A stretch of DNA of 63,811 nt, the filler included, from Reticulomyxa filosa (Eukaryota; Protista; Foraminifera): the NCBI GenBank assembly GCA_000512085.1. It is 14 parts of 14 records of this genome, joined end to end, with 100 filler letters (N's around TTAATTAATTAA, not from the genome) between each part and the next. Parts side by side here need not be neighbours in the genome. Positions count along the whole stretch, not along the records: positions 47,479 to 59,775 come from ASPP01006817.1; 13 more parts are not named here. One strand, written 5' to 3'. Positions 1-59,775 of this stretch are shown here, piece after piece. The position numbers and the translations under genes were made by a program. Every line of letters starts with the position of its first letter. Position 1 is the first letter of the stretch. The notes below the pieces were generated by a model, which worked only from the letters and a program-made list of their open reading frames with translations, ran no database searches and was not told the DNA's origin.

Positions 1-1577
1 TAGTTGTCGCGAGAGAGAGAGAGAGAGGATGAAATGAAATGGGAATGGACATACCACAAGACAAGTCGTTTTAATCCGTGGTTTTGAATCAATCCTTGTG
101 CCAAAACTTGCACTCCGTCGTTGAAGATTTCATTATACGACAACTCAAGCTCTTCCAAAGTGTGATTGTTTATTAACATTTTTGCCAACACTTGCGCTCC
201 GCGAGCACCCGTGCGATTGATATTCATTCGTAGTGTTTTCAGAGAATGGTTCATGGTAAGGCCTTCCAATTGTTGTTTGCAATAGATGTTAGTGTAGCAA
301 CCCTTTCATTGTTTCTTTTTTTTAAAAAAGGAGAGAGAGAAAGGCCGAGGGAAATCAAACCAAATCAAAGCAAAACAAAACAAGCAAAGAAAAAACCTTT
401 GGCAATATCCATGGTACGTTGTGCTCCTAATCTGTTCCTCGAAATATCTAACTTTTGCAATGAGTTATTTCGCAATAGAAATGTTTGAATCTCACGTGCC
501 CCCAAATCTCCGAACCGATTCGCCGCAATATTTAAATGTGTCAATGTGTTATTACGCTCAATTCCTCGACGCAAATATTTGCATCCTAAAAAAAAAAATG
601 CATATATGTATATGTATACATTATATATTTATATATATATATATGTATATATGTATATAATAAAAACCATTGTCAGAAATTTCACAATTTTCCAAGGACA
701 ATCGACGAATGGTGTTGCTGATGCAAATGGCCTTTCCCAGATAACCGCATCCGGCGTCGCTGGTGCAATTATAGGACAGATTGAGGGCCTTCAGGCAGCC
801 AATGCGTTCGCGGCCTTCAAAGCCGGCCAACACGCTCCTCACGTCCGTGACTTGAAACGAGTCCAGGTCGATCCCCGGCGCCAGCAGTCCTGCAATAGCA
901 CGAGTGCCACTCACACCAATTTCATTCCCCATCAAGTCCAATATTTCCAACGAATGCATACAAGAATTTATCAATCCATCTGCTAGCACTTTGGCTCCAG
1001 GAGATTGGATCGCACACCATCGCAACTTCAAAATCCTTTTTTTTTTTTTTAAAAAAAAAAAAAGGGTCACGAAAAAAGTTCATTTGGTTATATAAAATTA
1101 AGCAAATCAATAAATATACATGTGTGTGTTTATTTATTTAATCACCCCCTTTTTTTTTTTTTTTAACTTAATGCCCTTGATCGGTTCTGTGGTGAGTATT
1201 TGTCTCCACAGTTTCATGCACTCGCTTCGACATACTGAAGGCGGTAACATCGACTTGTCCAGCTTGCCATTTTTGGAAACTTGTGCAAACACTTCACGGA
1301 GTATTTGGAGTTTTGCTTTTTCATTTTGCTCTTGTCTTCCCTTGTTTTTCTCATTGTTGCCGTTCGTCGTTACTCCTCCTGTCGTGTTGCTGTTGTTGTT
1401 ATGCGTCGTTGAGCCGTCCTCACTATCTTTGCTGCCTTTTCTCGTCTTCTCTTTTGTTCCTTTGTTTTGTGTCTCATTTTCATTCTCGTTCTCATTTTTG
1501 TTGTTGTCGCCCTCAGCTTCGTCTGCTGCTGCTTGCACTGGGTCGAGCTCTCTGTCTCTATTGCCCTGCGCTGACAT
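1..1577 (-). CDS. Ribonuclease-inhibitor-type leucine-rich-repeat protein (NLRC3/RanGAP-like LRRs), multi-exon, 3' end runs off the window
   Basis: Repeated LxxLxLxxNxIGxxGA units (LEILDLMGNEIGVSGTRAIA, LTHLNIAANRFGDLGAREI, LQKLDISRNRLGAQ). GT-AG intron 586-667 joins ISDNG/CKYLRRG in frame. Confidence 0.8.
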
Positions 1578-5146: not shown

Positions 5147-5629
5147 TTGCAATTTGTTCAAATACTACGCAATGAAAAAAAAAAATGCAATTATTCCATG
5201 TTTTAGTCAAACGAAATTTTGGTTTGACATATTTTTCCTCACATTTTTCGAATTGAAATTCTGCTTTTGATTTAATAAAACGTCTATTTCGATGACAATA
5301 GCTTCTCGAAATTTCTAACTTGACACACTCTATAGGCAAATGCAGTAGAATAAAAAAGAAAGTTGACACATAAAACGGCACTTTATAAAATGATTGGTTT
5401 TCTCAATGAAAAAACAACATTTGAATCTTTCATTTAATTTTTTGAAATTTTCGAAAAAAGTTAATAATCATGCTCACGTATTCATTGATTTGCCAATTCT
5501 TTTTTAAGCATTTTTGTAAAATACATTTGATAAATTTTTTTTTGCGTTTTTTTGTTTTTTTTAAAAATTTTTTGGAAGTTTTATCTGACAAAATCTAAAG
5601 AGCTTTAATTACTGCTTAGAAAATAAAGA

Positions 5630-5729
5630 NNNNNNNNNNNNNNNNNNNNNNNNNNNNNNNNNNNNNNNNNNNNTTAATTAATTAANNNNNNNNNNNNNNN
5701 NNNNNNNNNNNNNNNNNNNNNNNNNNNNN
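5630..5729. other. Artificial contig linker (N44-TTAATTAATTAA-N44). Also at 27639, 29066, 31806, 33379, 37123, 39123, 41817, 43794, 47379, 59776, 60929, 62712
   Basis: Identical 100-nt spacer with stops in all six frames, occurring 13 times. Confidence 0.98.
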
Positions 5730-5820
5730 TTTCTGGTCGTTGTAAGATTTTGTGATGTTCTTTCTTTTGTTTTCGAGAGAGTAGTCCGATACTTGACACG
5801 CCAACCCATCTAAAAAATAA

Positions 5821-5920
5821 AGGAGACTAAAAGAAAGCCCCGAAGGCCTGAACACCAAAGAAAAAGACAACAGAATGCCTGGAAACTAAAGAAAAGGCCA
5901 CCGAAGGCCAGGAAATCAAC
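5821..5920. repeat. Degenerate tandem repeat, about 30-nt unit, 3 copies plus a partial
   Basis: GGAGACTAAAAGAAAGCCCCGAAGGCCT / GAACACCAAAGAAAAAGACAACAGAATGCCT / GGAAACTAAAGAAAAGGCCACCGAAGGCCA / GGAAATCAAC. Confidence 0.55.
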
Positions 5921-6180
5921 ACTTGAAATGCTTCAACAATTTTTATAGTTAAAATTGAAATCTTTTTGAAATGATATAAAATGATGTATTTTCTAAACTA
6001 AAATTATTGCTTAAATGTTGAAGCTTGAATGTTATTTGCTAGTTACTTTTTGTAACGTATTGTGTTATTTAGTACTGTATTCATGTTTGAGGTGCTTGTT
6101 TTGACAATATTTTCCTTTTATCAATTCAACAAATTACATTCTTCCATGCTAAAAAAAAAAAGAACAAAGAGACAAATTCA

Positions 6181-6750
6181 GTGGCAAGATCAGATACTGA
6201 CAAAGCGTGTCTATTGGCAAAGACATTTGCGGAACCCCCTCAACCTCCAAAAGATGTGGATGAAAAGCATTATGAAATTGTTGAAAATGACATTAAACAA
6301 TATCTAAACCATTGGAATTGGCTGATTACTTCATTGGTTTGAGCGATATTCAATATAGTGATATTACAAAAGCAGAAGTCATTGAACTATTAGACATTTG
6401 TCGCCGTACAAAGCGCAAGGTCCAGATAATATCCACAATCAAATGTTAAAAATGGTGATCTTGTATTGTTTGACTTATTCCAAGCATGTTAATTATATCT
6501 ATGGCAAAGCAGCAAGGAAACTTGGATTTGACATACAAAGGTATCAGACCAAGTTTATCAATATATAATCTATTATGCAAGACCATCATTCGTCCGAGTA
6601 TCGAGTGCATTTTGGAATGGTGCAGCAGACACTCATAAGAGGCGATTGCATTGGGATATGTGAGTAATCATTACAGATCACATCACATTGTGGAAGAGTG
6701 ATTATCCTCACTGATTGCAAGTTCGTAGTCAATTCGATATTCAATAAATG
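6181..6750 (+). mobile_element. Degenerate non-LTR retrotransposon ORF2 remnant (pre-RT region joined by deletion to RNase H)
   Basis: VARSDTDKACLLAKTF (6181). IRHLSPYKAQGPDNIHNQMLK (6389-6451) matches the KAPGPDGI motif preceding LINE RT. GRVIILTDCKFVVNSI (about 6690-6740) matches the RNase H xIxTDS motif. Frameshifts and stops present. Confidence 0.8.
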
Positions 6751-7329
6751 AGGTTCTGACATCAAAAAAAAAATTAATTTAAACATCCTTCATCATCGAG
6801 ATAAACTTTTGAAAAAAAAGTTGTATTTTGAAGCACAGAATAACTAGATACTGCAACATCTAGCAGTATCTGAAAGAAATTCGAATTAATCTTCGATTAT
6901 TAACAACGATTTTCGTCGTCAACAAGATTGCGTGGTGAAAACAGAATAAAGACAAAGTAGTTGAAAACTTTCAGATATCAGATATATACAAGATAACAAA
7001 CGAAACACCCAAAATGGACAGTCGAAACAAAATAATATTAACAAGAACAAAATTTAGCAACTTTTCTATTAAATAAGCCGAAATGTCAATAGCAACAATA
7101 TTCACATGCTTTTCTTATAATAAGTGTTTAAATTTTATTTTTTGTTTTAGTTTGCTTTAATTTGTTAACAGATTTGAATTGAATCTCAATATTTCACTGA
7201 GACTTCAACACTTCGAAAACAAGGCTCATACAATTGGATCAATAGATTTCATCCAATTATCAATATTCTTTTTCAATCTTAATCTAAATTGTTCCCGTTT
7301 ATTGCTTCTCAGATTCCAAATCTCAATCT

Positions 7330-8250
7330 TTTGTCGTCAATTCGTAGTGATTCCACCCAACACGATTCATAACCAAATACATTAAATGTATCATCATGTT
7401 ATTGAATGATCGTGATGATGAATGCAAATCTCTTCGACATAACACTCCAGATCTTCCTGTGATGAACATAAAGATACTGGAAATTATAATCAATGTCCTT
7501 CTTCTTTTGATCTTTTGATGCAAATTTTGTTCTAATATTTGTGTCTTGGAATAAATCCGTTGATGTTGTTCTGGAACGCCAATAGACTGCTGATCTCCAA
7601 TCCACATCTAAACCAACATTGGGTTAATTGATTGCAATTGCAGGAATGCTGATTTAACCTCTGCTAATTCACGTCTTAGCAATGATATTTCATCATCATC
7701 AGATTTCTTGTTCTGCAGCCTTTGATCTTTGTTATTCTTTCTATTGGCCCTCTTCTTCGGTTTCTGATGTCTCATTTCCATTTGACACTTGTTGTCCTTT
7801 GACACTCTGCACATTTGATTTAATTGGAATGTGTTGATATGCCTTCTTCTTCAGGAATGCATTGTCAATTTAATATCAAGTTTTCTCTTGATTTTCGAAT
7901 CACATTACATTGCAATAAATCGCTTGGGTGCTGCTTTCGACATAATACACATTTGTGTTTGCTTGGGTCATTCTTGTATCGTCATTCTGCCGCTTCGTGA
8001 TTTGCCAATCCGCAATACTTACATACTTTGCGCTTTTTTATACATTCACGAACAATATGGTTCAACCTGTAGCATTTCCTGCATTTTTTGAAATGAGATT
8101 TTTGTCTTGATTTGACTTTGTTGAATAATTTCACTTTCACCATTGAATATTCAATCTGAATATCATTGTCTTTCAATATCTTGACAACATCTTCAGTCTT
8201 GTGTATTTTATCCTAGCATGGCTTGCAGTATAGCCTATTGGTGTAAATCA
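7330..8250 (-). mobile_element. Degenerate non-LTR retrotransposon ORF1 (gag-like zinc knuckles) plus start of ORF2 AP endonuclease
   Basis: CRKCYRLNHIVREC is a CX2CX4HX4C knuckle; CKYCGLANHEAAE* is a second with the final Cys replaced by a stop. Downstream frame reads LLAFQNNINGF (about 7555-7587), like the APE N-terminal QxNxNG motif. Many stops. Confidence 0.7.
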
Positions 8251-9750
8251 CCTTGTCTCGACCGTCCGTATCTCCTTCACAAGCCTTTTTATCAGTAAGT
8301 GTTTGTCGGTTTTGCCCGATGTTCAGTAGAAGTTACTCGACCCTCGGAGTTCTGCCAAAACAAAGACTGTTATTTGCCTCGATATTGCTAATTTCCCTAA
8401 GCGTCGAACACCCTTAATGCTAATCTAGGATCCTTCAAAAAACAACTTTTTCAGTCAAGTTAAAAATGACCATGATGTTGCTTTAATTTTTTTTTACATA
8501 CTGGAGATGAATATCAATTCAGTTCAACCGGATCTAGTTTCCTTCAGGAATGCTTCAGTCTGAAGATAAATTGAATATCAGCAATAATCAATTCCAGAGT
8601 TCATACGATCAATTCGATCGAAACGGTCAGAACATGTTCATTCCACACAAAGAATATCTGAAACAGACCAGACAAGTCTCAATTATTATGATCTGAATCG
8701 TGTTGTGTTCAAATTAGCTTCACGTCTTTTGTAGATTCTATTGAAATTTACAGAATAGTAAATCATATATCTAATGAAGATGAAGCTGTAACATCAATTG
8801 TGTGCTTCAATTTGTATGTACTAAAAAAGAATTAACGAGACAATATTTATTGTTATTTGAATTTCCATAATCTTGCTCGATTGGATTATAATATTGATTA
8901 AATTATTTTTTATTATTAACAATTTATTTAACAATTTGATTTAATCAATTAATCCAATTATACTTGTTATAAATATATTTTATATAAAATCGAATCCTGA
9001 CAATGTATTACTGAAGCTGTTGATATAATTATTTATATAAAAAAGTATCAAGTCATATTTGAATGGCAGTTTATGTCTATTACGAGAAATCAAAGGATAA
9101 ATTTCTCAAACAAAGAATAAAATCAATTTTTGTTATATAAAAGAGCTTCCAAGCAATTTCGAAAGAAATTATAATGTTGTAAAGTATTACTTCATTTTAT
9201 GAAAAGAATGCAAAATCTATTTACAGTTTAAAGCATAAATTTCAACATTATCAACAAAATAATTCAGTTGCATGGCCATATGCTGAAAAAGCAAATTACA
9301 AAAACATTTGCATAACTGCTACAATTCCCAAAAGATTTGTATAAAAATCAGAATTAAATTTGAAACCGCAATATCAAAATCACTTCAATTGGAATGTTTT
9401 GGTCTATTGATATTCGTCCAGATAACAACGCAACAAATTTTATAATACTCTTTTCACTGGCCTCTTCCACACCCACTTCCCACAATCTTATATAAAATTG
9501 CAATAATTTAAACAAAAATAACTAGTTGTAAATAAATAGTATTTTTTAGTCCAATTTTGTTGTTGAGTCCAGTTTCTTGAGCGGAACAATCAAATTGAGC
9601 GCTAATAATGGAAAATTAACAACAAAGTTTTTCAACGACCGTTCAGTTGTTCAAAAAAGTAAAAAAACTGTTCCCGTAAAAAAAAAGGAATTAAACAATA
9701 AATTTAATCTCAAGTCGATTCCGTTATAAACACTTCAACAACCAATCAAA

Positions 9751-47478: not shown

Positions 47479-48260
47479 AAAAAAAAAAAAAAAAAAAATT
47501 CCTTCGCAGTAACAATACGTATATGTTTGTTTTTAAACTGCAATTCGTGAGGAAGTTTTATTACTACGTTATCATCATCATGGGCTTTTGGCGAAGCTGG
47601 TTGTACTCCGCTGAAGCGTGTCGTGCTTGGTGCTCCGCTGTGATTGTTTACGACTGGCTCTTCGTCCATATAGGCCGTCAATATGTTGCGGTACTCTGTC
47701 GATGATTGGGTCTTTCACGGCGTTTTCATTTGACAAAAATAGTGTTGACATAACACGAGAAAAAGAAAAAGAGATGGAGATAAAGGGGTCCACAACAACA
47801 ACACAGCAAAAAATGGGTTTGGTTATTATATACAAATGTAAATATACTTTGATAAACAAAATTATATGTGTATGAGTACATGTGTATGTATATGTATGTA
47901 ACAATTTTTTTTTTTTGACTGACCCACCCCTCCCCCTCTGATAAACTTTGTGATCGATAATTTTTCGTAAATGTTTTGTAAACCGCTTCATTTGATGGAA
48001 ATTCTCAGACACCTCTGCATATAAATGATTATATTTATGCCGCATTTCATTAAATGTATTTTCTGGAGGTAAGTAAAAGTGCGTCATGTCCACATCTTTC
48101 CCTTCCTTGCATATTTCTGTTATGTTTGTTTAACTTTTGTGTTTCCTCTATTTTAGAAAGCCTCACACTTTTTCGTTTGAAAACGTGTGGTGAATGCTTC
48201 GTTAACTGCTGACATCCTTCAAGGATGGTATGTAGCCACTGGGAGCTGCTCCTGATTGTA
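47479..48260 (-). CDS. Hypothetical protein fragment
   Basis: Coding exons can be joined as ..KIIDHK/TQSSTEYRNILTAYMDEEP.. across a microsatellite intron. Confidence 0.45.
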
Positions 48261-49384
48261 ACATGTTGAAGACTAAAGATAATATAATTTATTGAAATGA
48301 TCTCTACGTAGTCGCTTTTGCGCAAAAGATTTCTTTATTAATGTAATCAATAATAATACAACAAATTTAGTGCATTTTTACTTAACTTGTAGTGTATTTA
48401 TTATTTATTTTATTAAAATTTGAAGAAATGTCGAAAAATTTAATAATAAATTAGGACGCAAAAAATTCTTTTTTAATAATCTAAACTCAAGTAATATTAA
48501 GATATGGACATTATGATAGATTATTGGTGCTTTTCAAGAAATCAAACGACTGAAACTACAATAACGAGCCTTCATCAATCTGAAGATAAAATTGCAACAA
48601 CGAACAAAACAACAGAAGATAAACATGATGAAAAATATAAAACAGATTATAAGCTAAGTAGATATGCTTGATGACATGTTTGTGAAAATAAATTTTTGTC
48701 TTTGCTTTTGGATTAATACACTTATTGGAGTTAAATGTAGTGGAATCTTGTCGTTATTTGTAGTCGTCTTGATGTTCTTTTTGCAGACTTTGTCGTAATT
48801 GTGCTGGATGGTATCGAACTTATATTGCAGAGACTGCTTCATGTTCATTAGCAAAATCGAACAAATTTGAGTATACAATATCAAATTAATTATATACATT
48901 CACAAATATACGTATATATACAGATGAATATATATTCATATATATAACGTATAAGTCACTAAAAAAAAAGAAATAGCAACTTATTACGATGATCGAACAA
49001 CAAACAATAAAATTAGAAAATACTTAGAACGACAATTGATATGACAAAATGATATTGATAACATGATGGCTGACGATGTTGGAACTTTAATAGTTTATGT
49101 TGAACGAATCGCTTATCAATAAAATGACAACTCTTACCAATTAAAATAGAACTTCAATACAACTAGCATTGATAGCTTTATTACAAGCTTTCACAAAATA
49201 TGTTTCTTTTTTTATTGTTTTATTTGTTGTATATAATTTGTGATTAAAAAGTCTAAAAAACAAATTATAATTCAAATCAAATTTAGATTTATTAATGAGA
49301 TTGACAAACTTGTTGTCAATTACGTTATTTACTTTGTTCTTTTTTTAAAATACAAGTCAAAATATTCAAATATTTATTTAACAT

Positions 49385-49645
49385 AGACATACAATGTCTT
49401 CATGTTTGACATATTTTGCTAATCATCCAAATTACTAAATATTCACTGGACATACTCGTGCGGTGTACAGCATTGATTATTCAATATTTGAATTGTGTGA
49501 AATTTCATTATATCGTTATCATAACAATCGTCAAAATGTCATTTGTTCTTCATCAAATGACAACGTCATTCGTTTTTGGAATTTCAAACATGATATGCAA
49601 TTACGAATATTCAATGGACACGAATGAGGTGTTCGTTGCATGTTT
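49385..49645 (+). pseudogene. WD40-repeat pseudogene (expanded G-beta-like family)
   Basis: SSKLL..FTGHTRAVYSIDYS; NVICSSSNDNVIRFWNFKHDMQLRIFNGHE*. Stops and frameshifts. Confidence 0.8.
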
Positions 49646-50119
49646 TCAATGAACATACAGATGCTGTGAAATGAAGCTGGAGTTAAATTTCCAAACTTTT
49701 TATATTTGATATCTTGTTATTTGAGTGAAACTCTGTCAATCATACAATAAAATATAAATTTTTTTAAATAAAATATATTTTTTTAAGAAAATAAAAACAG
49801 TTTTTTCAATTAAAATACCAGCAAAATGTCTAGCAATTTGTTTTGTTTTTTATGTAATTTAGTGATTAAAAAAACTTTTGAAAAGATATACAAGAAATGA
49901 AGAATTGCAACCCATTAGCGACAAGCTACATCAGTTTAAAGTTGAAACGATAGACGTTCATGATAGCTTTACAAAAAGACAGACTTCTTTGGTAAATTGT
50001 TTGTAAATTATTAAGAATTCAAATATATTGAGTTTTTTTGAAAAGACTTTACTAAAAATAAATCATTGTATATGCAAAAGATATTTGAAACTATTAGCTG
50101 TGCGAAATGAACAAGTATT

Positions 50120-52510
50120 TCATACGTTGCTTTGCTTGGATTTTTTGTTGTCGAGTTCTTTTGGTCCAGGGTCTCTGGTTACTGTTGTACGTTCAATCAA
50201 GAATTTGACATCTTTCATAACATTGGATAAGATATTAAATTTTTCAATTTCCTTTTCTTCTGACATATGGAGCTGTAGCTCCAAGGTATTATTACGATGC
50301 TCCATAACTGTCAATCTTTGACCTTTATCGTTCAACGATTGATGTAAAATTGTCAATTGTTTATTGTGTTCTTTAAGTATCCTTTTTAGTGTCATATTGT
50401 GTTCGTTGGTCAGCTGCTTCATTTGATCATTGCATTGCTGTAAAGACAGTTCTTGTGACTGTAATTTCAATTTTAATTGTTCTGCTGTGTTTTCGTGCAT
50501 TGTTATTTTCATATTTAACTCATTAATTTCTTTTTTGTACTCATTCTTAGTTTTTTGCTCTGTCAGTAACCATTCTTTATATTCTTTATTTTCGTTTTTC
50601 AATGTTTCCAACATTTGCGTATTTTGTTGCATCTGTTCATTCTTTTGAGACTCGACAAGATCTTTTGCTTGTTTCAGTTCGTTCATACGACCTTGTAGCT
50701 CTTGTATTTGCAAATTTATCTGCTGGGACTGTTGTTGGCAACACTTCTTTTCAATTTCAATCAAGTATTTTTCATGATTCATTTGAAGTGACAATATTTC
50801 ACTTTGACATAAAGCTTTGGCTTGTGTCAATTCGATATTTGATTTCTGCAATAATTAGAAAACAAAACATTTTATTCGAAAATCCAGACAAAAGGACAAC
50901 CACACGAGTACGTGAACTTTTTTGTTCCAGCATAACTTCCAACTCATGTATTGAATTTTGCAATAATTGTTTTTCTTTTTCAAATTTAGCGACAATATCT
51001 TCCTTTTCTTGCTTAAATTTGGCTTGTAACGCGTTTTCCATTTCGTCATGTTGTTTTTTTGGTTTTTGCTGGTTGTACTGCTTGTTTCTAAATTTCCTAA
51101 TCATTTCATTTAAGCAAAAGTAAAAAAAGATCAAATAAATATTTAAAGTTATTACAGTTTTTTAAAATGGTTTGATATAATTTACTTCATGTGGACAAAA
51201 CTCGTCAAAGTTTCAATTTCAAGCTGCAGACGTTTCGTCTCGCTTTGATGTAATAACTTCAAATCATTAAAAGAGATTTCTAATAGTGTATTTTCTTGTT
51301 TCAGTTGTTCAAATTTAGAAATAGAGATATTATTGTCTTCAGCAGATTGCTTTAGTTCACTTTGAAGCTTGGCAGCTTCAGTTGACAATGTTACCTTTTC
51401 CTATTTATCAGACAATGAAGCAAAATAGAATAAAATAAAACCAAATAGAAAGATGTTCAAATTTTACTCACTTGTGACAGCTCGTTGATCTCTTGTTGTA
51501 GAGATTCTATTATTTTAGTTTTTTTTTGCAAAGATTCATCGAAATTTGCTATGTCTATCTTATGTTGCAATTGCAGGCTATCAATACTCTGTTTTTGTAA
51601 CACGACAGTGGGAAAGATCTCTATGTCATCGCCATTCGTCAGTATTTGTTGTGTCACTGAAAGTTCACTTTGAAGATAGTCTTTTGACTCCAGTTCTTGC
51701 TGCGAAGAGGACTCTGTTTTTTGATGTAGCCGCTCTGTTTTTAGCAGTGAATCTGAATTGGGTTTTTTTGTACAATAAGCAATTCCCATCTGTAATTAGA
51801 CTTTATAATGCTGAAAAGTATTTTTCTCTTCTTTTCCCTTCCTTAAATGGAGATATAAATAATCTCCAAACATACTGATGTCCTGTAAAATTTGAAACGG
51901 AATCGGGTTTCCATTCAAGAGGCACTCTTTCAAGTTGGTATTATTTTTCAAAGCTTGTAAAATATGCAATGCTCCGTTAATTCCAATGGTATTAAATCTC
52001 AGGTCTATGTTAGTAAACAAAGATACAACTGCGCTCCCAAATAAAAAAAAAACACTGAGCTAACCCAAATGAACCAGCTTTGGATTTTTTTCCAAAAATG
52101 TAGCAATTTCAAGAACACTTTCTTCGTTAATTTGATTATTGTGCAAATCCAACTATATTTACATTATAAACATGTTTATTACACTAAAATATGTTTATCT
52201 TAGCTATGCAAAATATAACATGAGTAATGTTAGTGTACATCAGGTCACGGCATAAATAGTGTAATGAATGGTCTAAACCTAAAAAGTTCCATGCCAGTTT
52301 TAAATGAGTGATAGGGATATTGTTACTCTTTATGAATTCAGCTAAAATTTTACACCCTAATTCACCAATGTCATTGCCCTCCAAATTGATAGAGGTACAA
52401 TCGTTTAAGTTGTGAGTTTGTGCAGCAAGCTCGTGACAAAGAATCATGCATCCTAATTTCAATTTACATATTTTTGCTTGATAAAACTTACGACTTTGTT
52501 TTTTCCTCAA
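50120..52510 (-). CDS. LRR plus long coiled-coil protein (LRRC45-like), multi-exon; start uncertain
   Basis: INLEGNDIGELGCKILA, LKLAWNFLG, DLHNNQI, IDLRFNTIGINGALHILQALKNNTNLKECLLNGNPIP, followed by an extended E/Q/K/L heptad region. Confidence 0.75.
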
Positions 52511-53289
52511 ACTTTAGATACATGTCACTGCTATAAAAAAAGTTTTTTCATAAACCAGAGTTGGTGCCAACAACTAACCCTCATCTCTTAAGTTCATATC
52601 ACCAAAATTAATTTCATTGATAAATTGTTGTTCTCGTAGCTTGCTTAAAATAATTGCCTTTTCCATTGTTTTTTAATAAATAGCCAGCAACAAGACCAAT
52701 TAAATTTATCAGAACAAAATATATCACTCAAAATTTTTTAGATATTGACGTTTTTGTGACATCTTTGAATGGACGTATCAAAAATCTTGTTGGTCGAGTC
52801 ACTCTAGTTAAGCCAAAAAAGATTTCACAAATGAAAAGTTTTTATTTTGCGGTTTTTTGAATGACGTATTACAAGCAATGTTTTTTCTTTTGTGCTGATG
52901 TTCACTGGCTATCTTTTCATGGAATTTATTCGTCTTACAAAAAAAAAAAGGGCTCTCCAACAACTTCGGGCGTGTACTATATCAAATCGCGTTTTATGAC
53001 ATTTTATTTTATCTTGGTTTTGTAAACATCCAAATATAATGAAATATTTAATTGCAAGGAACACAGTGCAGGAAAAGTGTGAGCTGTGAATGTTTTATCA
53101 ATGTTACAAAATTAAAAATTTTGTCTGTATCTGATAAACTTCCTTTTGTGCCAACAAGTCGAATAATCTATCTACAAATGTGTATGAAATCTGATAGTTA
53201 TTTATTCACTTCTCGAACACAAGGCTTGTGAATACATAGTGATAAAAGTTTTTTGTGTGAATAATTTCAGATACTTTGAGTAATTTTAG

Positions 53290-56040
53290 TTATTCGAAAG
53301 TCTCACATGAACAGTGTCCCTTTTGAAAACAATGTTGCATTTTGTCGTTTTCAAGACAAACAAGTACAGTGATAGTTCGATTACATAGAAGTGAAAGTTT
53401 TTTCATAAAAATGTGACAATCATCGCACATGTGTTTATTTTTGTGAACAATCAGTTGCGTGTTTGGAGATGTCTGTTGGAGTTGATGTACAACCCCATAG
53501 CGTTCATTATGTTTGCAATTACGCTTATTAACATTTGTCTTTGTATATGTGTTGTTTCCGACAGTTATGTGTTGGACTCTTATTTTATCGTACAAGTCAT
53601 TCAATTGATCTTGCACTTTGACCAAAGCAATTTTTGTAGGAATATGTCCATGTGGTTGTGTGTCCCAAGACAATAATTTATTATTTTGAAAGATGTATTG
53701 ATTCACACAAGCAACCTCAGCCTCATGCAACGGCAATCTGGAGCACATGTCTTCCCACACACAATTGACCTCATTCCATTGACGCATGTCCGCATAAAGA
53801 GTGTTGAGCCTCCAACACCACCGTGCGGATACGTTCCATCCCGGCATGCGGGTCAAATGAAAGTGCATTTTTTTATAGACCCGTAAATTGCGATGCATGT
53901 AGCAATGCACTGCAATATCTTCACACAGAGCCAATTCCTCATTGATGGGATGCGCCAAATGGAACTTGGTTCTCGTATAAATCCCATATTTGCGTGCATA
54001 GCTCCACGCCAGTTCCAATTGATTCTGCCGCGCCAAGCATCGAATGACAATATTCAATAGTTGGTCCATACCTTCAATTTCCGGAGATTGACACCATCCC
54101 ATCTCCCAAATACGTACACAAACATCCCACTGACCATGCAAGCTGCACTGTCGCAAAAATGCTTCGTACATGCCCAGCGTTTTGTATTTGCCCGGCACCT
54201 CTCCAAATAATTTCATTGCTTGTTTGATATGGCCATATCTGGCCAGCTCTCGTATCATAGTGATATACACCATTGTATTGCTCTTCTTTGCCCCACAATT
54301 CCGAAACAATCGATAGGCCAAATGCACATCCCTACAAGCACAGAACATGTGCAACGCGGCACTCCAGCACTGTTGTGTCCACTGATTTGCACGTCGCCAC
54401 TGTCGGCGACACATGCGATAGTATCTCTTTGCTCTCGCCAAATTGCAAAGTTGGGCACAAGCATGGAACACCGTGACAAACGTTGCTATTTTCGGCCGTG
54501 CATGTGCTGTAGCAACAGAAGCAGCAGCATCCTTTTCCAGATCACCAAAATGATGGTCAAACAATTGCACTACTTTGGAGTGGTTGCCACATTTGGCATA
54601 CGTATACATGATGGCCGTGACCAAGTGGGTATCCAGCATAACTGCAGCTGCAGCATACATTTGCTTGGCTTCTTCAATGATTCGAAAGGCATCTGTGAAA
54701 TCTCTACTCTTGGTATGCAAATGAATAAGAATGCAATACCAAGCCGACCAAACTATTCGCTTTATGATTGGATCTGTCAGTCTCACATCCGACTGAACAT
54801 GGCTCCACAAGGACTCCATTTTGTCCCGTTCGTTCAATTCCCCATATTTCCGGATCAATTGCATACACACTCTCAAGGATATGTGCTGGCCTTTCAATCT
54901 GACAAACAAAAGGCTATGCACTTTATCCAACTGTGCCGTCGTCTGGCATGCTTTAATCACCGTCGGCCAATATCTGTTTGCAATGTCGCTCAATGCGCTG
55001 GGCCACACCTGTGTATCACTCACTTTTGCTTCCGTGGCAATCTCCCTGGTGTTTAACATGCCCTCATGCCATTTCAAATACAATTTTGTCATCCACACTA
55101 CATTCAACCCATTGCGTTTGCACATGTGCAAAAACACATTTCCAAAACGGTCCCAGTCTTTGCATTGCGCAAAGAAACGCAACAGCAAAGAGGTCAATCG
55201 CTTGTCGGCAAAAATTGCACCTTGCATGTGCGCATGATTGCCAATGGCCTTGTCAAAAAACATGCTTCCAAACATATTCCAAGGTGTGATAGATTTTTGG
55301 TTCTCCATCTCCCATATCAACCCTTTGAACAATCTCTCCACATATTCGGCATTCAAACTGGCTGTGTGGAACAATGGCCACTTATCCACAAATGTGTCCC
55401 AAATGCCGTCCTTTTTGTATGGTACTCTCAACAATGTGTCTGCCAACTGCTTCTTCAGATTTTCATCCCTTGCAAGCATCTCCACAAAAGTCGGATCGGA
55501 TAACAATATCGTACAAATCTTGTTTGACAATGGGTCATTTTCATTTGCTTGTAATTGCTTGCAACACATTTGCATTGCCATGCGACTAGCTTTCTTTTTT
55601 CCTTCCTTTGCATTTGTATTTGTATTTGCATTTGCATTTGCATTTACATTCGTGTTTGGATTTGTATTATTTGTCTTTTTCTGATCCTTCGGACCATATT
55701 CACTTTTGTATATGTTCCAAAAGAGTTCCAAAGCTTTCCTACGCATTTCTGAGGTTTGTGATTGGTTGTAGATTTTGTCTAACAATTCCATGCCATTTTG
55801 CTCACGTTTTGCATTGCCTTTGGACCAAATTTTATCGTTATACGCTTTCACAAATCTTTCGGCTTTGTCAAGTTCGTTGTTGCTCATGTGCTTCATCAGC
55901 ACTTCTTCCCTCGTCTCGATGGATGTAGGTAACTTATTGCTGTATGAAACACCTTTTCGCACATTTATCCTTCTCACACTTCCAAAGACGCAAAATAATG
56001 GACGAGGATGTCCTGTGGAGTGAAGCGCAACTCTAAACAT
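53290..56040 (-). CDS. PLS-class pentatricopeptide-repeat protein with E1/E2 and DYW-type cytidine deaminase domain; putative organellar RNA-editing factor, intronless
   Basis: PPR motifs LVTAIMYTYAKCGNHSKVVQLFD, ATFVTVFHACAQLCNL, CWSAALHMFCACRDVHLAYRLF, VYITMIRELARYGHIKQAMKLF. E2-like LNTLYADMRQWNEVNCVWEDM. HNE-x25-CDDCH and HCFQKGHCSC. Confidence 0.92.
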   Translation of the reverse strand: MFRVALHSTGHPRPLFCVFGSVRRINVRKGVSYSNKLPTSIETREEVLMKHMSNNELDKAERFVKAYNDKIWSKGNAKREQNGMELLDKIYNQSQTSEMRRKALELFWNIYKSEYGPKDQKKTNNTNPNTNVNANANANTNTNAKEGKKKASRMAMQMCCKQLQANENDPLSNKICTILLSDPTFVEMLARDENLKKQLADTLLRVPYKKDGIWDTFVDKWPLFHTASLNAEYVERLFKGLIWEMENQKSITPWNMFGSMFFDKAIGNHAHMQGAIFADKRLTSLLLRFFAQCKDWDRFGNVFLHMCKRNGLNVVWMTKLYLKWHEGMLNTREIATEAKVSDTQVWPSALSDIANRYWPTVIKACQTTAQLDKVHSLLFVRLKGQHISLRVCMQLIRKYGELNERDKMESLWSHVQSDVRLTDPIIKRIVWSAWYCILIHLHTKSRDFTDAFRIIEEAKQMYAAAAVMLDTHLVTAIMYTYAKCGNHSKVVQLFDHHFGDLEKDAAASVATAHARPKIATFVTVFHACAQLCNLARAKRYYRMCRRQWRRANQWTQQCWSAALHMFCACRDVHLAYRLFRNCGAKKSNTMVYITMIRELARYGHIKQAMKLFGEVPGKYKTLGMYEAFLRQCSLHGQWDVCVRIWEMGWCQSPEIEGMDQLLNIVIRCLARQNQLELAWSYARKYGIYTRTKFHLAHPINEELALCEDIAVHCYMHRNLRVYKKMHFHLTRMPGWNVSARWCWRLNTLYADMRQWNEVNCVWEDMCSRLPLHEAEVACVNQYIFQNNKLLSWDTQPHGHIPTKIALVKVQDQLNDLYDKIRVQHITVGNNTYTKTNVNKRNCKHNERYGVVHQLQQTSPNTQLIVHKNKHMCDDCHIFMKKLSLLCNRTITVLVCLENDKMQHCFQKGHCSCETFE

Positions 56041-56537
56041 TAATTGAAAAATTGTGTAGTCACTAAGGAAGACTTCTATACATATAACTGACTTCTAATG
56101 AGTCACAAAAAATAAAATGGAACTTTTCTTTTGGTAGTCCTAGTGGATTGATTAAAATCTTTTGTTGTGATAAAGAATGGTAATTTCCAGCAATTTTACA
56201 AAATTTACTGTAAATAGCTTGGATAACTATTACTGCAGAATAAAAACAAAAAATATTATCTAAAAAGAAGAGCAAGGATCGCAAAGATGATGTTTTTTAA
56301 AATATGCTAATTTTGAAATTTGTTCGACTCATTAAAAATTAATCTGTTATAAAAAGAAAAATATTTCATCTAATAAATCTACAAGTGAAAAAAATATGTC
56401 ACAGCTTCACCAGGCATATAGATGAAACACCCACACTCTCATCTACTGACGTCAATAGAATATATTATTTTAAAATTTTTTAGTTTTGATTATCAAATTT
56501 GTAAGAAATTGTGCTGAGAATATTTATCCAAAAAAAT

Positions 56538-58349
56538 ATGACATTAACTAAACCGGTAAATTTTAACAGTCTTGACAACAGACAATCTTTAAAAACGAAT
56601 GAAACTACTTCTTATTTACTACGCGAAATTGACATAAATCGAATTGACCTATTTTGCAATAAAGAAAACGACAATCCGAATAGTTTTAATCAAGAACACA
56701 TTACAACTAGCAATGACGAACAGATTAGCAATAAGATTCAACGACGAGCATTGCGTCGACCAACAAAAGACGACAAACATCAAGAAAAAATCTTATTAAA
56801 TCATGAAACTAACACAACACTTCAACAAATTGTATCAAAAGATATGCATAACAATGGATCTAATAATGAAACAGCATTTCCACAAAGTCATGAGTTTACT
56901 ACAACACTAATTGAAGTAAAAAACAATAGTTGTAAAGAGACAGCAAGTAACATGCAAGAAAATGAAAGTGAAAACGAAAAGCAACAAAACAGTGAAGGAA
57001 AGAAAAACGTGGAAAGGAGCCACCAAAATTCCGAAAACTTGGAAGACGCTGAAACGATACAAAGCAATAAGTTGCAGACATGGGGAAATATTGTGAAATT
57101 TTTTGCAGATAGTTTGTTAAAATCAAGTGCTGCTAACGGAAAGAAATGGGCGAGTATGAAGGAAATATACGATTACTTGTGCCGGCACAACATTGAGCTA
57201 GGAACATTATCAGAACTGGGAATCAATGGAACGTGCAAAGAATGCAAGTGTTTGCAAGAAATGCCGCATGTGATGTCAAAATTGACCAATGGCGAACTGT
57301 GGTTGGGAGTTGATGAAGAAGGCGAATTGGAGGAAGGGAACAGAATTCTTGACGAAAATTTAAGATTGCAAATGAGAAACGAAGAAAACATTCCTGATGA
57401 CGTATCTTCACCCCACTGTATGGAGAACAAGCGAGGAGAAGTGAAGCCAGCAATGACATTGGCCGCAAAGACTTGGAATGGCTCGCTTTCGAACATGCGA
57501 AAGAGAACACATCAAGAAATGATAAGCGAAGATCTGGGCACCAGAGAAAAATCTTCGGATACTCTTGTCCAAGTTAAATTTTTTTTTTTTTTTTTTTTTT
57601 GTGCAAAGGAGGAAGAAAAAAAAAGTACCTTTTGAAAAAAAAATTATTTGGTTTGTTGTTCCGAAATTATATATTTTATTGATTTTCACCTATTATAGAG
57701 CAAACGTGCAGTCGTGCAAGGCTGCACACTACGACAAGGACAAGTTGTACCGATGGCATCACTGGAAGTGACCACTCCTGTGAATCCTTTGATCGCTTCG
57801 ATGACCTCGCGATTGACTCACTTTGCAGGACCTCACATGCAGACGTTTGTCGACAAGACGCTTCTCCCTTCGATTATTGTCAATTCCACACCGCAATTTC
57901 TGCCCTTTGAATTCAACAAAATAGCAGGAATGTCCGAGACTTGCGAGCTTCCATCTCACAACTCTTATTCTTCTTCTTCTTCTTGTTTTGGTTCGGCAGG
58001 AATGACTTCGCCTTTGCATGGCTTAAACACCTTCTCCAGTGAATCTTTTTATTATGAAATCGGGGAGTTGGATTATCAGCTGCCCTCGGATGGCACCAAG
58101 ATTGAGACACCTGATGGAAGGAATGCAACACTTGCGCACACCGATCATGCTTCCCTCGTACGTACGTATCCGCAGGAACGTGCACCGTCGGGCTACCAAG
58201 AGTGCGGGCAACTTCGCATGTGTAGAGGAGAAGATCGATCGCATGGTACGGTATCCCATGAAGACAAATTGAACAGCGCCGAGGGAGATTTTCAGGCTGG
58301 TTTCAGATACAGACGCAATGCTAGGGTGATTGGACGTATGGGCCCATAA
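56538..58349 (+). CDS. Hypothetical protein, two exons, divergently transcribed from the PPR-DYW gene
   Basis: Intron 57573-57698 joins DTLVQ/SKRAVVQG in frame with ORF 57714-58349. Confidence 0.65.
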
Positions 58350-59022
58350 ATGTACCGACTTTAAAAAAAAAGATATTGATAAGAATCACAAACACATATG
58401 AAAAAAGCAAACGAAAAGATAAATCTTCAGGGGAATTGGGATCAATAACAAAAAAAGTGCAGTTCGTCACTTTTTTTGCGTATTTGTTTTGAGCCTTTTT
58501 TGTTTCACGCAAAGCGTATGGAGATGTTTCGTGAAAGAATCTTTTGTTTCGATATATAGTGAATCGTTTTGTCTAAAGCGTCAAGAACGATTCTTAAATT
58601 AACGCAAACAATTATAGCATAAATGATATTTAAAGCTCTAACAATAATTTATATTTTTAAATTTGCAATAATACTTAAAAAAATCATACGAGTACAAAAT
58701 ATTTTTTTTTGAAATCTACTGATTGTGAAGACAATAATTCTATCGAATTACAAACTGCAAGATGATTGAAAAAAGATTCACAATTGATTTTATTTTTATC
58801 CAAAAAGAGTTGTTGACAAGAATTAAAAAATATCTTCTTGAAGATTTATTTAGGGATGCACAATCGCATGTAATAGAATTTCTTAAGATATCAAATATTT
58901 TTATTATTTGAGATATTGGATAAGATGCCTGTCTTGTCATTTGATAAGACGACAAAATGTGTTAATCTTTCAAAAATGAATCAATTTGTGTCAGTGAGTA
59001 TCTTTGGAGTCATTATAATTTT

Positions 59023-59117
59023 ATCGTTTCTACGTGTTCACAACACGTACTATCTGGCACCGGGCCGCGGGGGCAGGTCTGGGAGGACGGGCATGTGGTC
59101 GAGCACACTTTTTTTTT
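59023..59117. ncRNA. Candidate structured non-coding RNA or remnant (GC-rich island with hairpin; weakly 5S-like on the minus strand)
   Basis: Abrupt GC-rich segment in AT-rich intergenic DNA. Perfect 8-bp hairpin TACGTGTT-CAC-AACACGTA at 59031-59049. Followed by a T-run. Confidence 0.3.
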
Positions 59118-59455
59118 CATCAAAAATATTATACATTATCACGAGATTTATTTATACGAATCAAAAATTTTTGTTTTTGGAAGTTTTTAGCGTATTTTTT
59201 TTTTGTTAAGCAAATTTTCAAGAAGATTACTTTATTGTGAACTTACGAGAAAATAAAATTGAAATTAAGTGCGCCCCATTAAAAACACGACACTTGTCAA
59301 TTCATTCTTTGACATTTGTACGAAAAGCGTTTTTAAAGTCTTTTGTCCATTTCCAATTCTCAAAAAAACAAAAAAAATAAAATAAAATAAAACAACAAAA
59401 AGGGTACATAAGTTGTCCATAGACTCAAGGTTCATGTTTGACCTGGGAATAATAG

Positions 59456-59701
59456 TTAAGGTAAAGCAGTAGCGTCATCTGTGTCGTGTTCATTTTGTTC
59501 TTCGTCCATCTCAAAATTTTCTTCTGTCAAATCTTTGTGATCAGAGCTGTCAGTACCGTCCATGTCATGTGCATGCGGACTTTCCTCTTTCGTTTTTTCA
59601 ATATTATCGTTCATTGTCTCGCTTTCGCTTTCATTGTTCACGACTTTTTTTGTCTTTTCTTCTTTTTGTGCTGGTGTTTCTGTCGCCTTTCCATCCACCA
59701 C
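59456..59701 (-). CDS. Acidic low-complexity coding exon, partial
   Basis: Open E/D/K-rich frame next to a linker. Confidence 0.4.
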   Translation of the reverse strand: MVDGKATETPAQKEEKTKKVVNNESESETMNDNIEKTKEESPHAHDMDGTDSSDHKDLTEENFEMDEEQNEHDTDDATALP

Positions 59702-59739
59702 AAATAAGATAACAAAAGAATGAGATTATTTGTTTGTAT

Positions 59740-59775
<36 letters not shown>

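Follow-up and report, generated by a model that had tools for sequence, protein, structure and literature searches.

We found that the freshwater foraminiferan Reticulomyxa filosa encodes what is almost certainly a highly divergent PLS-class PPR-E1-E2-DYW protein. The window analysed here is a 63,811-nucleotide stretch of joined R. filosa records, filler included, and the gene lies in it on contig ASPP01006817.1 (GCA_000512085.1) as an uninterrupted, intronless 916-codon open reading frame (ORF) running from an ATG to a stop codon (Table 1). An initial annotation made from the sequence had described this 916-aa ORF, guessed at a foraminiferal source and placed the product among PLS-type PPR-E-DYW factors. 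The ORF proved unbroken, the contig belongs to the R. filosa genome, and the family placement was borne out by Pfam matches to DYW_deaminase and PPR, by alignment with the synthetic PPR-DYW protein 9kfx and by a deaminase-like fold. A 916-codon ORF would arise by chance with a probability of ~1e-25, a figure that follows from our own estimate of ~0.06 stop codons per random codon at the local base composition. C-to-U editing appears to be the likeliest single function of the protein, at a moderate likelihood, and the whole reading, in which a resident divergent PPR-E-DYW protein acts in the mitochondrion and edits C to U in one transcript, we regard as evenly poised.

Table 1. Features of the PPR-E-DYW gene and its product, with positions in the window
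Feature	Residues (aa)	Position	Strand	Basis or remark
Complete intronless ORF, PPR-E-DYW protein	916 codons + stop	53290..56040	minus	
Candidate mitochondrial presequence	1-41	55918..56040	minus	Composition: 7 Arg/Lys, 0 Asp/Glu, 7 Ser/Thr
Helical N-terminal region	44-252	55285..55911	minus	No sequence homologue; solenoid-like leads only
Low-complexity Asn/Thr/Ala insert	~120-143	55607..55683	minus	Imperfect TTTGCA hexamer array
~12 helix-hairpin PPR-like motifs, PLS order	253-690	53971..55284	minus	Pfam PPR, alignment, model
PPR motifs, first half	S 273-306, P 307-345, L 346-385, S 386-419, P 420-458, half L			Alignment
PPR motifs, second half	S 465-498, L 515-549, S 550-583, P2 586-620, L2 621-656, S2 657-690			Alignment
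E1-like helix pair	699-730	53851..53946	minus	
E2-like helix pair	737-770	53731..53832	minus	
DYW cytidine-deaminase-like domain	771-916	53293..53730	minus	Ends TFE, not DYW; no PG box
Catalytic zinc ligand and proton-shuttle Glu	H844-N-E846	53503..53511	minus	HNE, usually HSE
Other two Zn1 ligands and first Zn2 ligand	C872-D-D-C875-H876	53413..53427	minus	
Remaining Zn2 (structural zinc) ligands	H903...C910-S-C912	53305..53334	minus	

The repeat region matched the Pfam PPR model at 32.1 bits (cutoff 25), and the four PPR peptides quoted in the initial annotation were all found in it (TAIMYTYAKCGN at 475-486, TFVTVFHACAQL at 520-531, WSAALHMFCACRD at 559-571 and VYITMIRELARYG at 591-603). The N-terminal motifs are degenerate, with one P motif and half of one L motif missing, and residues 515-913 are colinear with the L-S-P2-L2-S2-E1-E2-DYW part of 9kfx (E 8e-17). 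Canonical PPR code pairs, which would read A, G and A, are kept in three S motifs (S281/N306, T475/D505 and S560/N588, respectively), and the code positions of the P motifs are mostly non-canonical. Residues 699-770 line up in order with E1/E2 in both 9kfx and the consensus, and were modelled as two helix pairs (pLDDT ~77-90), with no match to Pfam E_motif; of the Pfam models proposed at the outset, DYW_deaminase and PPR thus scored above their cutoffs and E_motif did not match. In the structure model, both the repeats and the deaminase core were confidently predicted. The N-terminal, E1/E2, HNE, CDDCH and HCFQKGHCSC strings noted at first sight were likewise all present in the translated ORF.

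The Pfam DYW_deaminase match (PF14432) reached 35.4 bits (gathering cutoff 24) over residues 839-914, covering only positions 20-91 of the 93 in the profile. Nine columns do not vary among 109 DYW proteins, and the R. filosa domain retains every one of them (H844, E846, C872, C875, H876, H903, G908, C910 and C912), and the spacing from HxE to CxxC is 25 residues, as first noted and as in nearly all other DYW proteins scanned. The zinc-ligand spacing fits Zn1 and Zn2 of OTP86, allowing for a 4-aa insert, with Zn2 ligands H876, H903, C910 and C912 corresponding to OTP86 H924, H947, C954 and C956. The gating lysine is also kept: K867 corresponds to K91 of PPR56, the loss of which abolishes editing. 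An AF2 model of residues 690-916 (pLDDT 78) was matched by Foldseek to 9kfx (E 3e-7) and to the DYW domains of OTP86 (7o4e/7o4f) and DYW1 (7w86; E 5e-5 to 5e-4 for these three entries), all at probability 1.0 and with target-normalised TM-scores of 0.64-0.71; bacterial toxin cytidine deaminases appeared in the same list with weaker scores. As modelled, the C-terminal domain adopts a cytidine-deaminase fold into which a gating domain is inserted.

Outside this core, the domain departs widely from the plant type. The PG-box position reads HEAEVACVNQYIF, lacking Pro-Gly and the preceding Lys, with both beta-strands still modelled; the C-terminus is CSC-E-T-F-E, with Glu at the position of the terminal Trp; a private 4-aa insert, LVCL (893-896), precedes the Zn2 His; and ~9 of 17 near-invariant positions are changed (S845N, A849G, L869K, R870H, D898N, R901M and D914T, among others). 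In plant factors, changes to the PG box, the preceding Lys or the terminal Trp reduce or abolish editing (PPR56, OTP86 or DYW1 assays). Since plant factors depend on a PG box and a terminal Trp and the R. filosa domain has neither, we use "site-specific deaminase" for the R. filosa protein only as a plausible hypothesis. In a quick IQ-TREE run, with SH-aLRT as the only support measure, the DYW branch was 3.4-4.5 substitutions per site long, or 6-8 times the median (~0.5). The best match among 1.84 billion representative proteins was only ~29-30% identical, and at 50% identity the protein clusters with no other. Neither the R. filosa query nor an alignment of foraminifera-like relatives drew more than almost no matches in word-indexed protein searches, because the R. 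filosa protein is too divergent, and a scan of JGI metagenomes revealed no relative. In hornworts, lycophytes and ferns, the DYW:KP proteins, which are candidates for U-to-C editing, carry a KP-type motif in place of the PG box and variant C-terminal motifs. We rejected this variant for the R. filosa protein, which has no Lys-Pro at the PG-box position; the fern and lycophyte matches ending CSCEI (P0094 and P0096) did not group with it in the tree.

Predicted PPR-DYW proteins were found in two more foraminifera, Nonionella stella and Bolivina argentea (EukProt EP01083/EP01084). Together with environmental relatives, they fall, like the R. filosa protein, on the same side of an SH-aLRT 94 split from plants, their PG box is variable too, and they have a non-Trp C-terminal aromatic residue (Tyr). 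The pattern CxxCH-x-F-[IM]-K is common to R. filosa and most of these foraminifera-like relatives; the Phe at +2 after CxxCH and the preceding Met are enriched in the group but not exclusive to it, and were dropped as synapomorphies. The Nonionella/Bolivina group scores 91-104 bits against Pfam DYW_deaminase, in contrast to 35 for R. filosa, and has HSE and canonical PPR scores, whereas R. filosa has HNE. The score of the R. filosa protein against the foraminifera-like DYW profile was reached by 9 of 40 and 18 of 40 random 8-sequence plant profiles; since the foraminifera-like profile thus scores no better than random plant profiles, the claim of a demonstrated orthology between R. filosa and Nonionella/Bolivina was dropped. 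A search with the Nonionella query recovered foraminiferal and environmental relatives, and no protein labelled Reticulomyxa among the best 150 of 446 matches (30 clusters labelled). The labelled matches included no R. filosa paralogue, and one copy is evident.

The losses in the DYW domain bear on a somewhat unlikely but serious alternative, that the product is an RNA-binding PPR protein of the mitochondrion with a DYW domain that still binds zinc and no longer deaminates, serving in transcript stabilisation, processing or cleavage or as a structural partner, with the ligands kept for folding. A very long branch would suit such a role, as would the missing PG box, preceding Lys and terminal Trp and the changes at about half of the near-invariant positions; each class of loss matters in PPR56, OTP86 or DYW1 assays. 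Fu et al. suggested other roles for protist DYW proteins, which outnumber the editing sites (PMC4202320). However, Glu846 and Lys867 are kept though folding needs neither, and the foraminifera-like relatives share the variable PG box and the non-Trp ending. Moreover, a 2026 survey describes non-plant DYW domains as variable in both PG box and DYW tripeptide (PMC13386178). Given this variability in the relatives and in non-plant domains, these features may be dispensable outside plants. It is unlikely that the gene is what is left of an editing factor, whether ancestral or gained by horizontal transfer, that is now decaying free of selection for function: its extreme divergence, its singleton status at 50% identity and the lack of an R. 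filosa paralogue among the labelled matches would fit decay, but 916 codons have stayed stop-free within AT-rich DNA, the invariant residues were selectively kept while neighbouring positions changed, and the repeats and deaminase core were modelled with confidence.

The first 41 residues, disordered in the structure model, resemble a mitochondrial presequence, in agreement with the Arg-rich, acid-poor N-terminus remarked on earlier; composition is what this prediction of targeting draws on. To our knowledge, DYW-type PPR proteins are the sole known organellar C-to-U editing enzymes, and all those characterised act in organelles. The compositional nature of the targeting prediction and the toxin deaminases in the Foldseek list leave some room for deamination of a non-mitochondrial substrate (cytosolic or nuclear RNA, or DNA, for instance in defence or genome control), but the Arg-rich, acid-free N-terminus, an architecture colinear with organellar editing factors and the organellar action of the characterised proteins make this very unlikely.

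We consider the gene a resident intronless nuclear gene of R. filosa. It sits inside a 12.3-kb contig between orphan genes with introns, and is flanked by AT-rich (26-30% GC), A/T-homopolymer-rich intergenic DNA; its GC of 0.42 is slightly higher than that of two of the three neighbouring genes, and its codon usage (RSCU) correlates with theirs at r = 0.63. The neighbouring ORFs had no Pfam matches, so that the taxonomic signal there is that of composition and introns alone, and an Rfam scan of the piece 53290-56040 gave no matches. In the tree, the R. filosa protein lies outside the SH-aLRT 94 group that contains all labelled plants, and proteins of Willaertia and Balamuthia group with the plants, apart from it. 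Contamination of the assembly by plant, prey or other protist DNA is hardly credible, though the initial annotation had named plant or prey contamination as a threat to its reading: the absence of introns beside an intron-bearing neighbour, the somewhat raised GC and the recurring concern over plant HGT or contamination for non-plant DYW genes speak for it, but the host-like flanks and codon usage, the low-complexity insert built from a hexamer repeat, the identity of <=~30% to any representative with no labelled plant match closer, and the placement outside the plant group all speak against it.

Land-plant PLS-E-DYW factors (Physcomitrium PPR56/PPR65 and Arabidopsis OTP86) share with the R. 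filosa protein the order of P-L-S repeats, P2-L2-S2, E1 and E2 (in R. filosa, E1-like and E2-like helix pairs) and DYW, together with HxE-25-CxxCH, the gating Lys, H...H...CxC as the second zinc site and a deaminase fold with an inserted gating helix. In contrast to these factors, to which it is 20-30% identical, the R. filosa protein has HNE for HSE and TFE for DYW, lacks the PG box and the preceding Lys, carries the four additional residues ahead of the Zn2 His, and has degenerate N-terminal repeats as well as a further 250 aa at its N-terminus. DYW-type PPR proteins have long been known from protists such as Naegleria gruberi, Acrasis kona, Physarum polycephalum and Acanthamoeba, and we also saw them in Willaertia and Balamuthia; those of Naegleria and Acrasis have been linked to a few mitochondrial C-to-U sites. 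The protist proteins form families of ~11-16 paralogues per species, clustered by taxon, whereas R. filosa has one evident copy, and Acrasis keeps the PG box that R. filosa lacks. Closer in taxonomy are the paradinids (Ascetosporea), which belong to the same supergroup, Rhizaria, and in which PPR-DYW proteins occur alongside C-to-U editing in the mitochondrion (Yabuki et al. 2025, PMC11946409). Like R. filosa, they have few copies per species (1-3) and conserve the H/E/C/C residues; editing is demonstrated in paradinids, whereas in R. filosa it is proposed. Paradinid and fungal DYW domains have a common 2-residue deletion and a reported joint clade; no match labelled paradinid was present among the matches looked up. 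The 2026 survey counts 31 DYW domains in Rhizaria (PMC13386178). "Undescribed", the word first applied to the candidate editing system, was therefore an overstatement: the family was already known from many protists, and the R. filosa copy is an unusually divergent new one. Our literature search found no paper naming Foraminifera for PPR-DYW proteins or C-to-U editing.

In the mechanism that we propose, the Arg-rich, acid-free N-terminus would send the protein to the mitochondrion, the ~12 PPR-like motifs would bind one transcript 5′ of the target cytidine, and the DYW domain would convert that base to U; land plants, Naegleria, Acrasis and paradinids provide the precedent. The mitochondrial genomes of Foraminifera were not described until 2023 and are very divergent, and we know of nobody who has checked them for editing. 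Mitochondrial genes were not found in the R. filosa assembly (Macher 2023, PMC10127745). A search of sequencing runs returned only two DNA runs labelled "synthetic metagenome" (each with 5% of the sampled words) and no RNA run; against the window, the two runs yielded a single exact piece of 155 bp, besides low-complexity matches at 55607-55645, a result that bears on neither expression nor habitat.

The patchy spread of DYW proteins outside plants is a standing puzzle, with horizontal transfer or an ancient origin as its possible answers. Now that a DYW gene is seen in the only foraminiferal genome sequenced, with relatives in two other foraminifera, there is a tangible motive for comparing RNA with DNA in foraminiferal mitochondria. 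Should the R. filosa domain prove inactive, it would be an example of a DYW domain retained for another role; an active one would reveal which of the "essential" plant features (PG box, terminal Trp) can be dispensed with, which would be useful for engineering compact C-to-U editors. A broader reading, which we hold to be rather doubtful, is that Foraminifera carry their own vertically inherited PPR-DYW family, comprising R. filosa, Nonionella, Bolivina and environmental relatives from the sea, that edits their highly divergent mitochondrial transcripts, with the R. filosa enzyme active despite lacking both PG box and terminal Trp. Were it true, the R. filosa DYW would be a minimal, rule-breaking domain, and foraminiferal C-to-U editing would have gone unnoticed so far.

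The piece at window positions 47479-59775 carries one long open reading frame (ORF), at 53290-56040 on the minus strand, which starts with ATG and runs for 916 codons. The ORF is real; the chance that 916 random codons contain no stop, estimated from base composition, is ~1e-25. All the peptide strings quoted in the initial annotation are present in it, and the key ones were re-translated by coordinate (see table). Its GC content is 42%, against 26-30% in the flanks. The protein is encoded exactly on contig ASPP01006817.1 (12,297 bp) of assembly GCA_000512085.1, which is the Reticulomyxa filosa genome according to a 2025 Nature paper (PMC11864969), so that the guess of a foraminiferal source was correct. 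The last 35 nt of the contig (59741-59775) are all A.

Features of the PPR-DYW gene, its protein and its neighbours
Feature	Window position	Strand	Residues (aa)	Basis
Neighbour gene; several short introns, Gln/Glu/Lys-rich coiled-coil protein, LRR-like N-terminal exon	50120-52666	-		
HCFQKGHCSC	53305-53334	-		re-translation
CDDCH	53413-53427	-		re-translation
HNE	53503-53511	-		re-translation
N-terminal 41 residues	55918-56040	-		re-translation
Orphan gene(s), divergent to the PPR-DYW gene; ORFs of 374 and 211 aa	56422-58349	+		
Disordered N-terminus			1-49	full-length model
Helical region; low confidence at 120-140 and 203-252			44-252	full-length model
About 12 helix hairpins			253-687	full-length model
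Helix pair at E1 position			699-730	full-length model
Helix pair at E2 position			739-768	full-length model
Mixed alpha/beta deaminase domain			780-906	full-length model
S, P, L, S, P motifs			273-306, 307-345, 346-385, 386-419, 420-458	PLS-DYW consensus
Half L, then S, then linker without P			S 465-498	PLS-DYW consensus
L, S, P2, L2, S2 motifs			515-549, 550-583, 586-620, 621-656, 657-690	PLS-DYW consensus

The protein almost certainly belongs to the PPR-E-DYW family, as had been proposed from the sequence. Pfam DYW_deaminase matched aa 839-914 at 35.4 bits (gathering cutoff 24), over positions 20-91 of its 93-position profile, and Pfam PPR matched at 32.1 bits (cutoff 25). Among PDB sequences the top match was the synthetic PPR-DYW structure 9kfx (E 8e-17), in a single colinear alignment over aa 515-913 that spans the L, S, P2-L2-S2, E1 and E2 motifs and the DYW domain in full, and the C-terminus also matched DYW1 (7w86) and OTP86 (7o4e). 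An AlphaFold2 model of aa 690-916, built with 109 aligned DYW proteins, reached a mean pLDDT of 78. When this model was compared with the PDB by Foldseek, 9kfx, the OTP86 DYW domain (both states) and DYW1 were best, with probability 1.0 and target-normalised TM-scores of 0.64-0.71, while bacterial toxin cytidine deaminases followed with much weaker E-values. The full-length model had a pLDDT of 73. Alignment to the consensus of 70 PLS-DYW proteins gave a P/L/S motif order, indicating a PLS-type array that degenerates towards the N-terminus and extends further than the repeats first listed.

The nine columns that are invariant among 109 aligned DYW C-termini are all kept in the R. filosa protein (H844, E846, C872, C875, H876, H903, G908, C910 and C912). 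In OTP86, H892, C920 and C923 are the ligands of the catalytic zinc, E894 is the catalytic residue, and H924, H947, C954 and C956 hold the structural zinc (PMC7611903); the spacings are the same here, allowing for a 4-residue insert, LVCL (aa 893-896), private to this protein. K867 is the counterpart of PPR56 DYW-K91, whose replacement abolishes editing (PMC10482289), and R847 retains the basic residue that follows the catalytic Glu in that comparison. However, the PG box is absent, the aligned segment being HEAEVACVNQYIF, and so is the Lys directly before it, which in PPR56 cannot be replaced (K555A) without a great loss of editing. The C-terminus reads CSC-ETFE, with Glu at the position of the terminal Trp, a residue that DYW1 and PpPPR65 cannot do without. 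Of 17 near-invariant positions, about 9 are altered (S845N, A849G, L869K, R870H, D898N, R901M, D914T and others), and the terminal branch of the domain measures 4.5 substitutions/site in a 114-sequence tree (median 0.54) and 3.4 in a 57-sequence tree of a longer region (median 0.51). Because several plant-essential features are missing, the claim of C-to-U editing is weakened. A metal and acid-base core retained amid such wide change fits an enzyme that follows rules of its own as well as a module that zinc stabilises for some other role.

An exhaustive phmmer search of 1.84 billion representatives returned the protein as a singleton. The next-best match was a Balamuthia PPR protein without the DYW motif (E 1e-20, 29% identity), after which came PPR proteins of conifers, lycophytes and Ginkgo (24-28% identity); aa 1-430 had no match. 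Since a plant or prey contaminant, a source the initial annotation had raised, would show far closer relatives, we regard such an origin as very improbable. The surroundings also speak for a resident gene: it is bordered by AT-rich intergenic DNA with A/T homopolymers (15 of at least 8 nt in the piece, and no G/C ones), lies between an intron-split coiled-coil/LRR-like gene and an orphan gene, correlates with its neighbours in RSCU (r = 0.63), and contains an imperfect array of 10 TTTGCA hexamers (55607-55668) encoding an Asn/Thr/Ala low-complexity insert (aa ~124-143). Pfam gave no match for the neighbour exon ORF at 50123-50851 (-) or for the orphan gene(s), whose two ORFs are parted by a long T/A homopolymer tract (~57565-57640); the second has a GC content of 0.49, unusually high for the contig. 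In 'synthetic metagenome' runs, only the TTTGCA array and one 155-bp piece of the PPR-DYW gene matched.

The first DYW tree placed P0148, assigned by EukProt to Nonionella stella, among the sequences closest to the query. Used as a query, it retrieved a second, distinct Nonionella protein (P0189), P0192 from Bolivina argentea, P0185 from a Tara-type metatranscriptome and several ENA contigs. This foram-like clade (P0148/P0177, P0189, P0192, P0185, P0186, P0078 and P0139, from benthic foraminiferal transcriptomes and marine/environmental assemblies) has Pfam DYW scores of 91-104 bits and ordinary PPR scores, variable PG boxes and, in most members, a C-terminal Tyr in place of Trp. On an environmental scaffold (ENA ERZ23488602, scaffold_752), an 832-aa PPR gene and a 272-aa E-DYW gene (P0147) were called at 5390-8819, with an intron-like stretch, GTAAGT...TTCAG, between them (~7847-7975). 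Most likely the two make up a single PPR-DYW gene, ~1100 aa long and with an intron, from a eukaryote of the clade; with its two ORFs joined by this predicted intron, the gene is clearly of the eukaryotic nuclear type. The 57-sequence tree put every labelled land plant, together with Willaertia and Balamuthia, in a 47-row group (SH-aLRT 94); the R. filosa protein was placed outside it, at the node of attachment of the foram-like clade (support 77). Most of the foram-like group has in common with the query a PG box that varies, a C-terminal aromatic other than Trp and the pattern CxxCH-x-F-[IM]-K, which are enriched in the group but not exclusive to it. A foram-like profile gave the query no higher score than random plant profiles did. 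No Reticulomyxa paralogue was found among 30 labelled clusters (best 150 of 446 phmmer matches), nor any Reticulomyxa protein among 99 matches to the Nonionella protein, most with a source name. At least three foraminiferal data sets thus contain PPR-DYW proteins; those of Nonionella and Bolivina are transcriptome-derived and open to contamination. A common foraminiferal origin would be compatible with these comparisons.

[quoted passage not shown] In Rhizaria, paradinids have PPR-DYW transcripts alongside mitochondrial editing on a massive scale, both C-to-U and A-to-I; according to the authors, this was the first report of C-to-U editing in rhizarians (Yabuki et al. 2025, PMC11946409). Surveying NCBI nr, a 2026 Mol Biol Evol paper counts 31 rhizarian DYW domains, the species unnamed in its main text (PMC13386178), and may already include the R. 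filosa protein. A full-text literature search for DYW with Foraminifera, Reticulomyxa or Rhizaria found no paper on foraminiferal DYW proteins, and we found none discussing the foram-like clade; the family is apparently undiscussed in Foraminifera so far. Macher et al. 2023 (PMC10127745), who published the first retarian mitogenomes, detected no mitochondrial gene in the assembly of R. filosa. They noted that miliolids share a conserved cox1 frameshift, implying some form of correction after transcription, and reported no RNA-vs-DNA comparison.

A C-to-U editing function is a reasonable proposal for the R. filosa protein, given its architecture, fold and conserved zinc ligands, Glu and Lys. 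With 7 Arg/Lys, 7 Ser/Thr and no Asp/Glu ahead of the first acidic residue, at position 42, the N-terminal 41 residues have a composition that might direct mitochondrial import. The P and S motifs would then bind RNA sequence-specifically, and the DYW domain would hydrolytically deaminate a cytidine located 3′ of the bound tract, a few nucleotides away. We consider the odds of this complete scenario to be even. Three S motifs carry canonical position-5/last pairs in the consensus alignment (S281/N306 for A, T475/D505 for G and S560/N588 for A). By these assignments the PPR code yields no target prediction, because the pairs of the P motifs and of S2 are non-canonical.

Taken together, the R. 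filosa protein is a new, unusually divergent member of the PPR-DYW family. Its gene is a pointer to check foraminiferal mitochondria for C-to-U editing, and its DYW domain offers a natural test of what such domains can do without.
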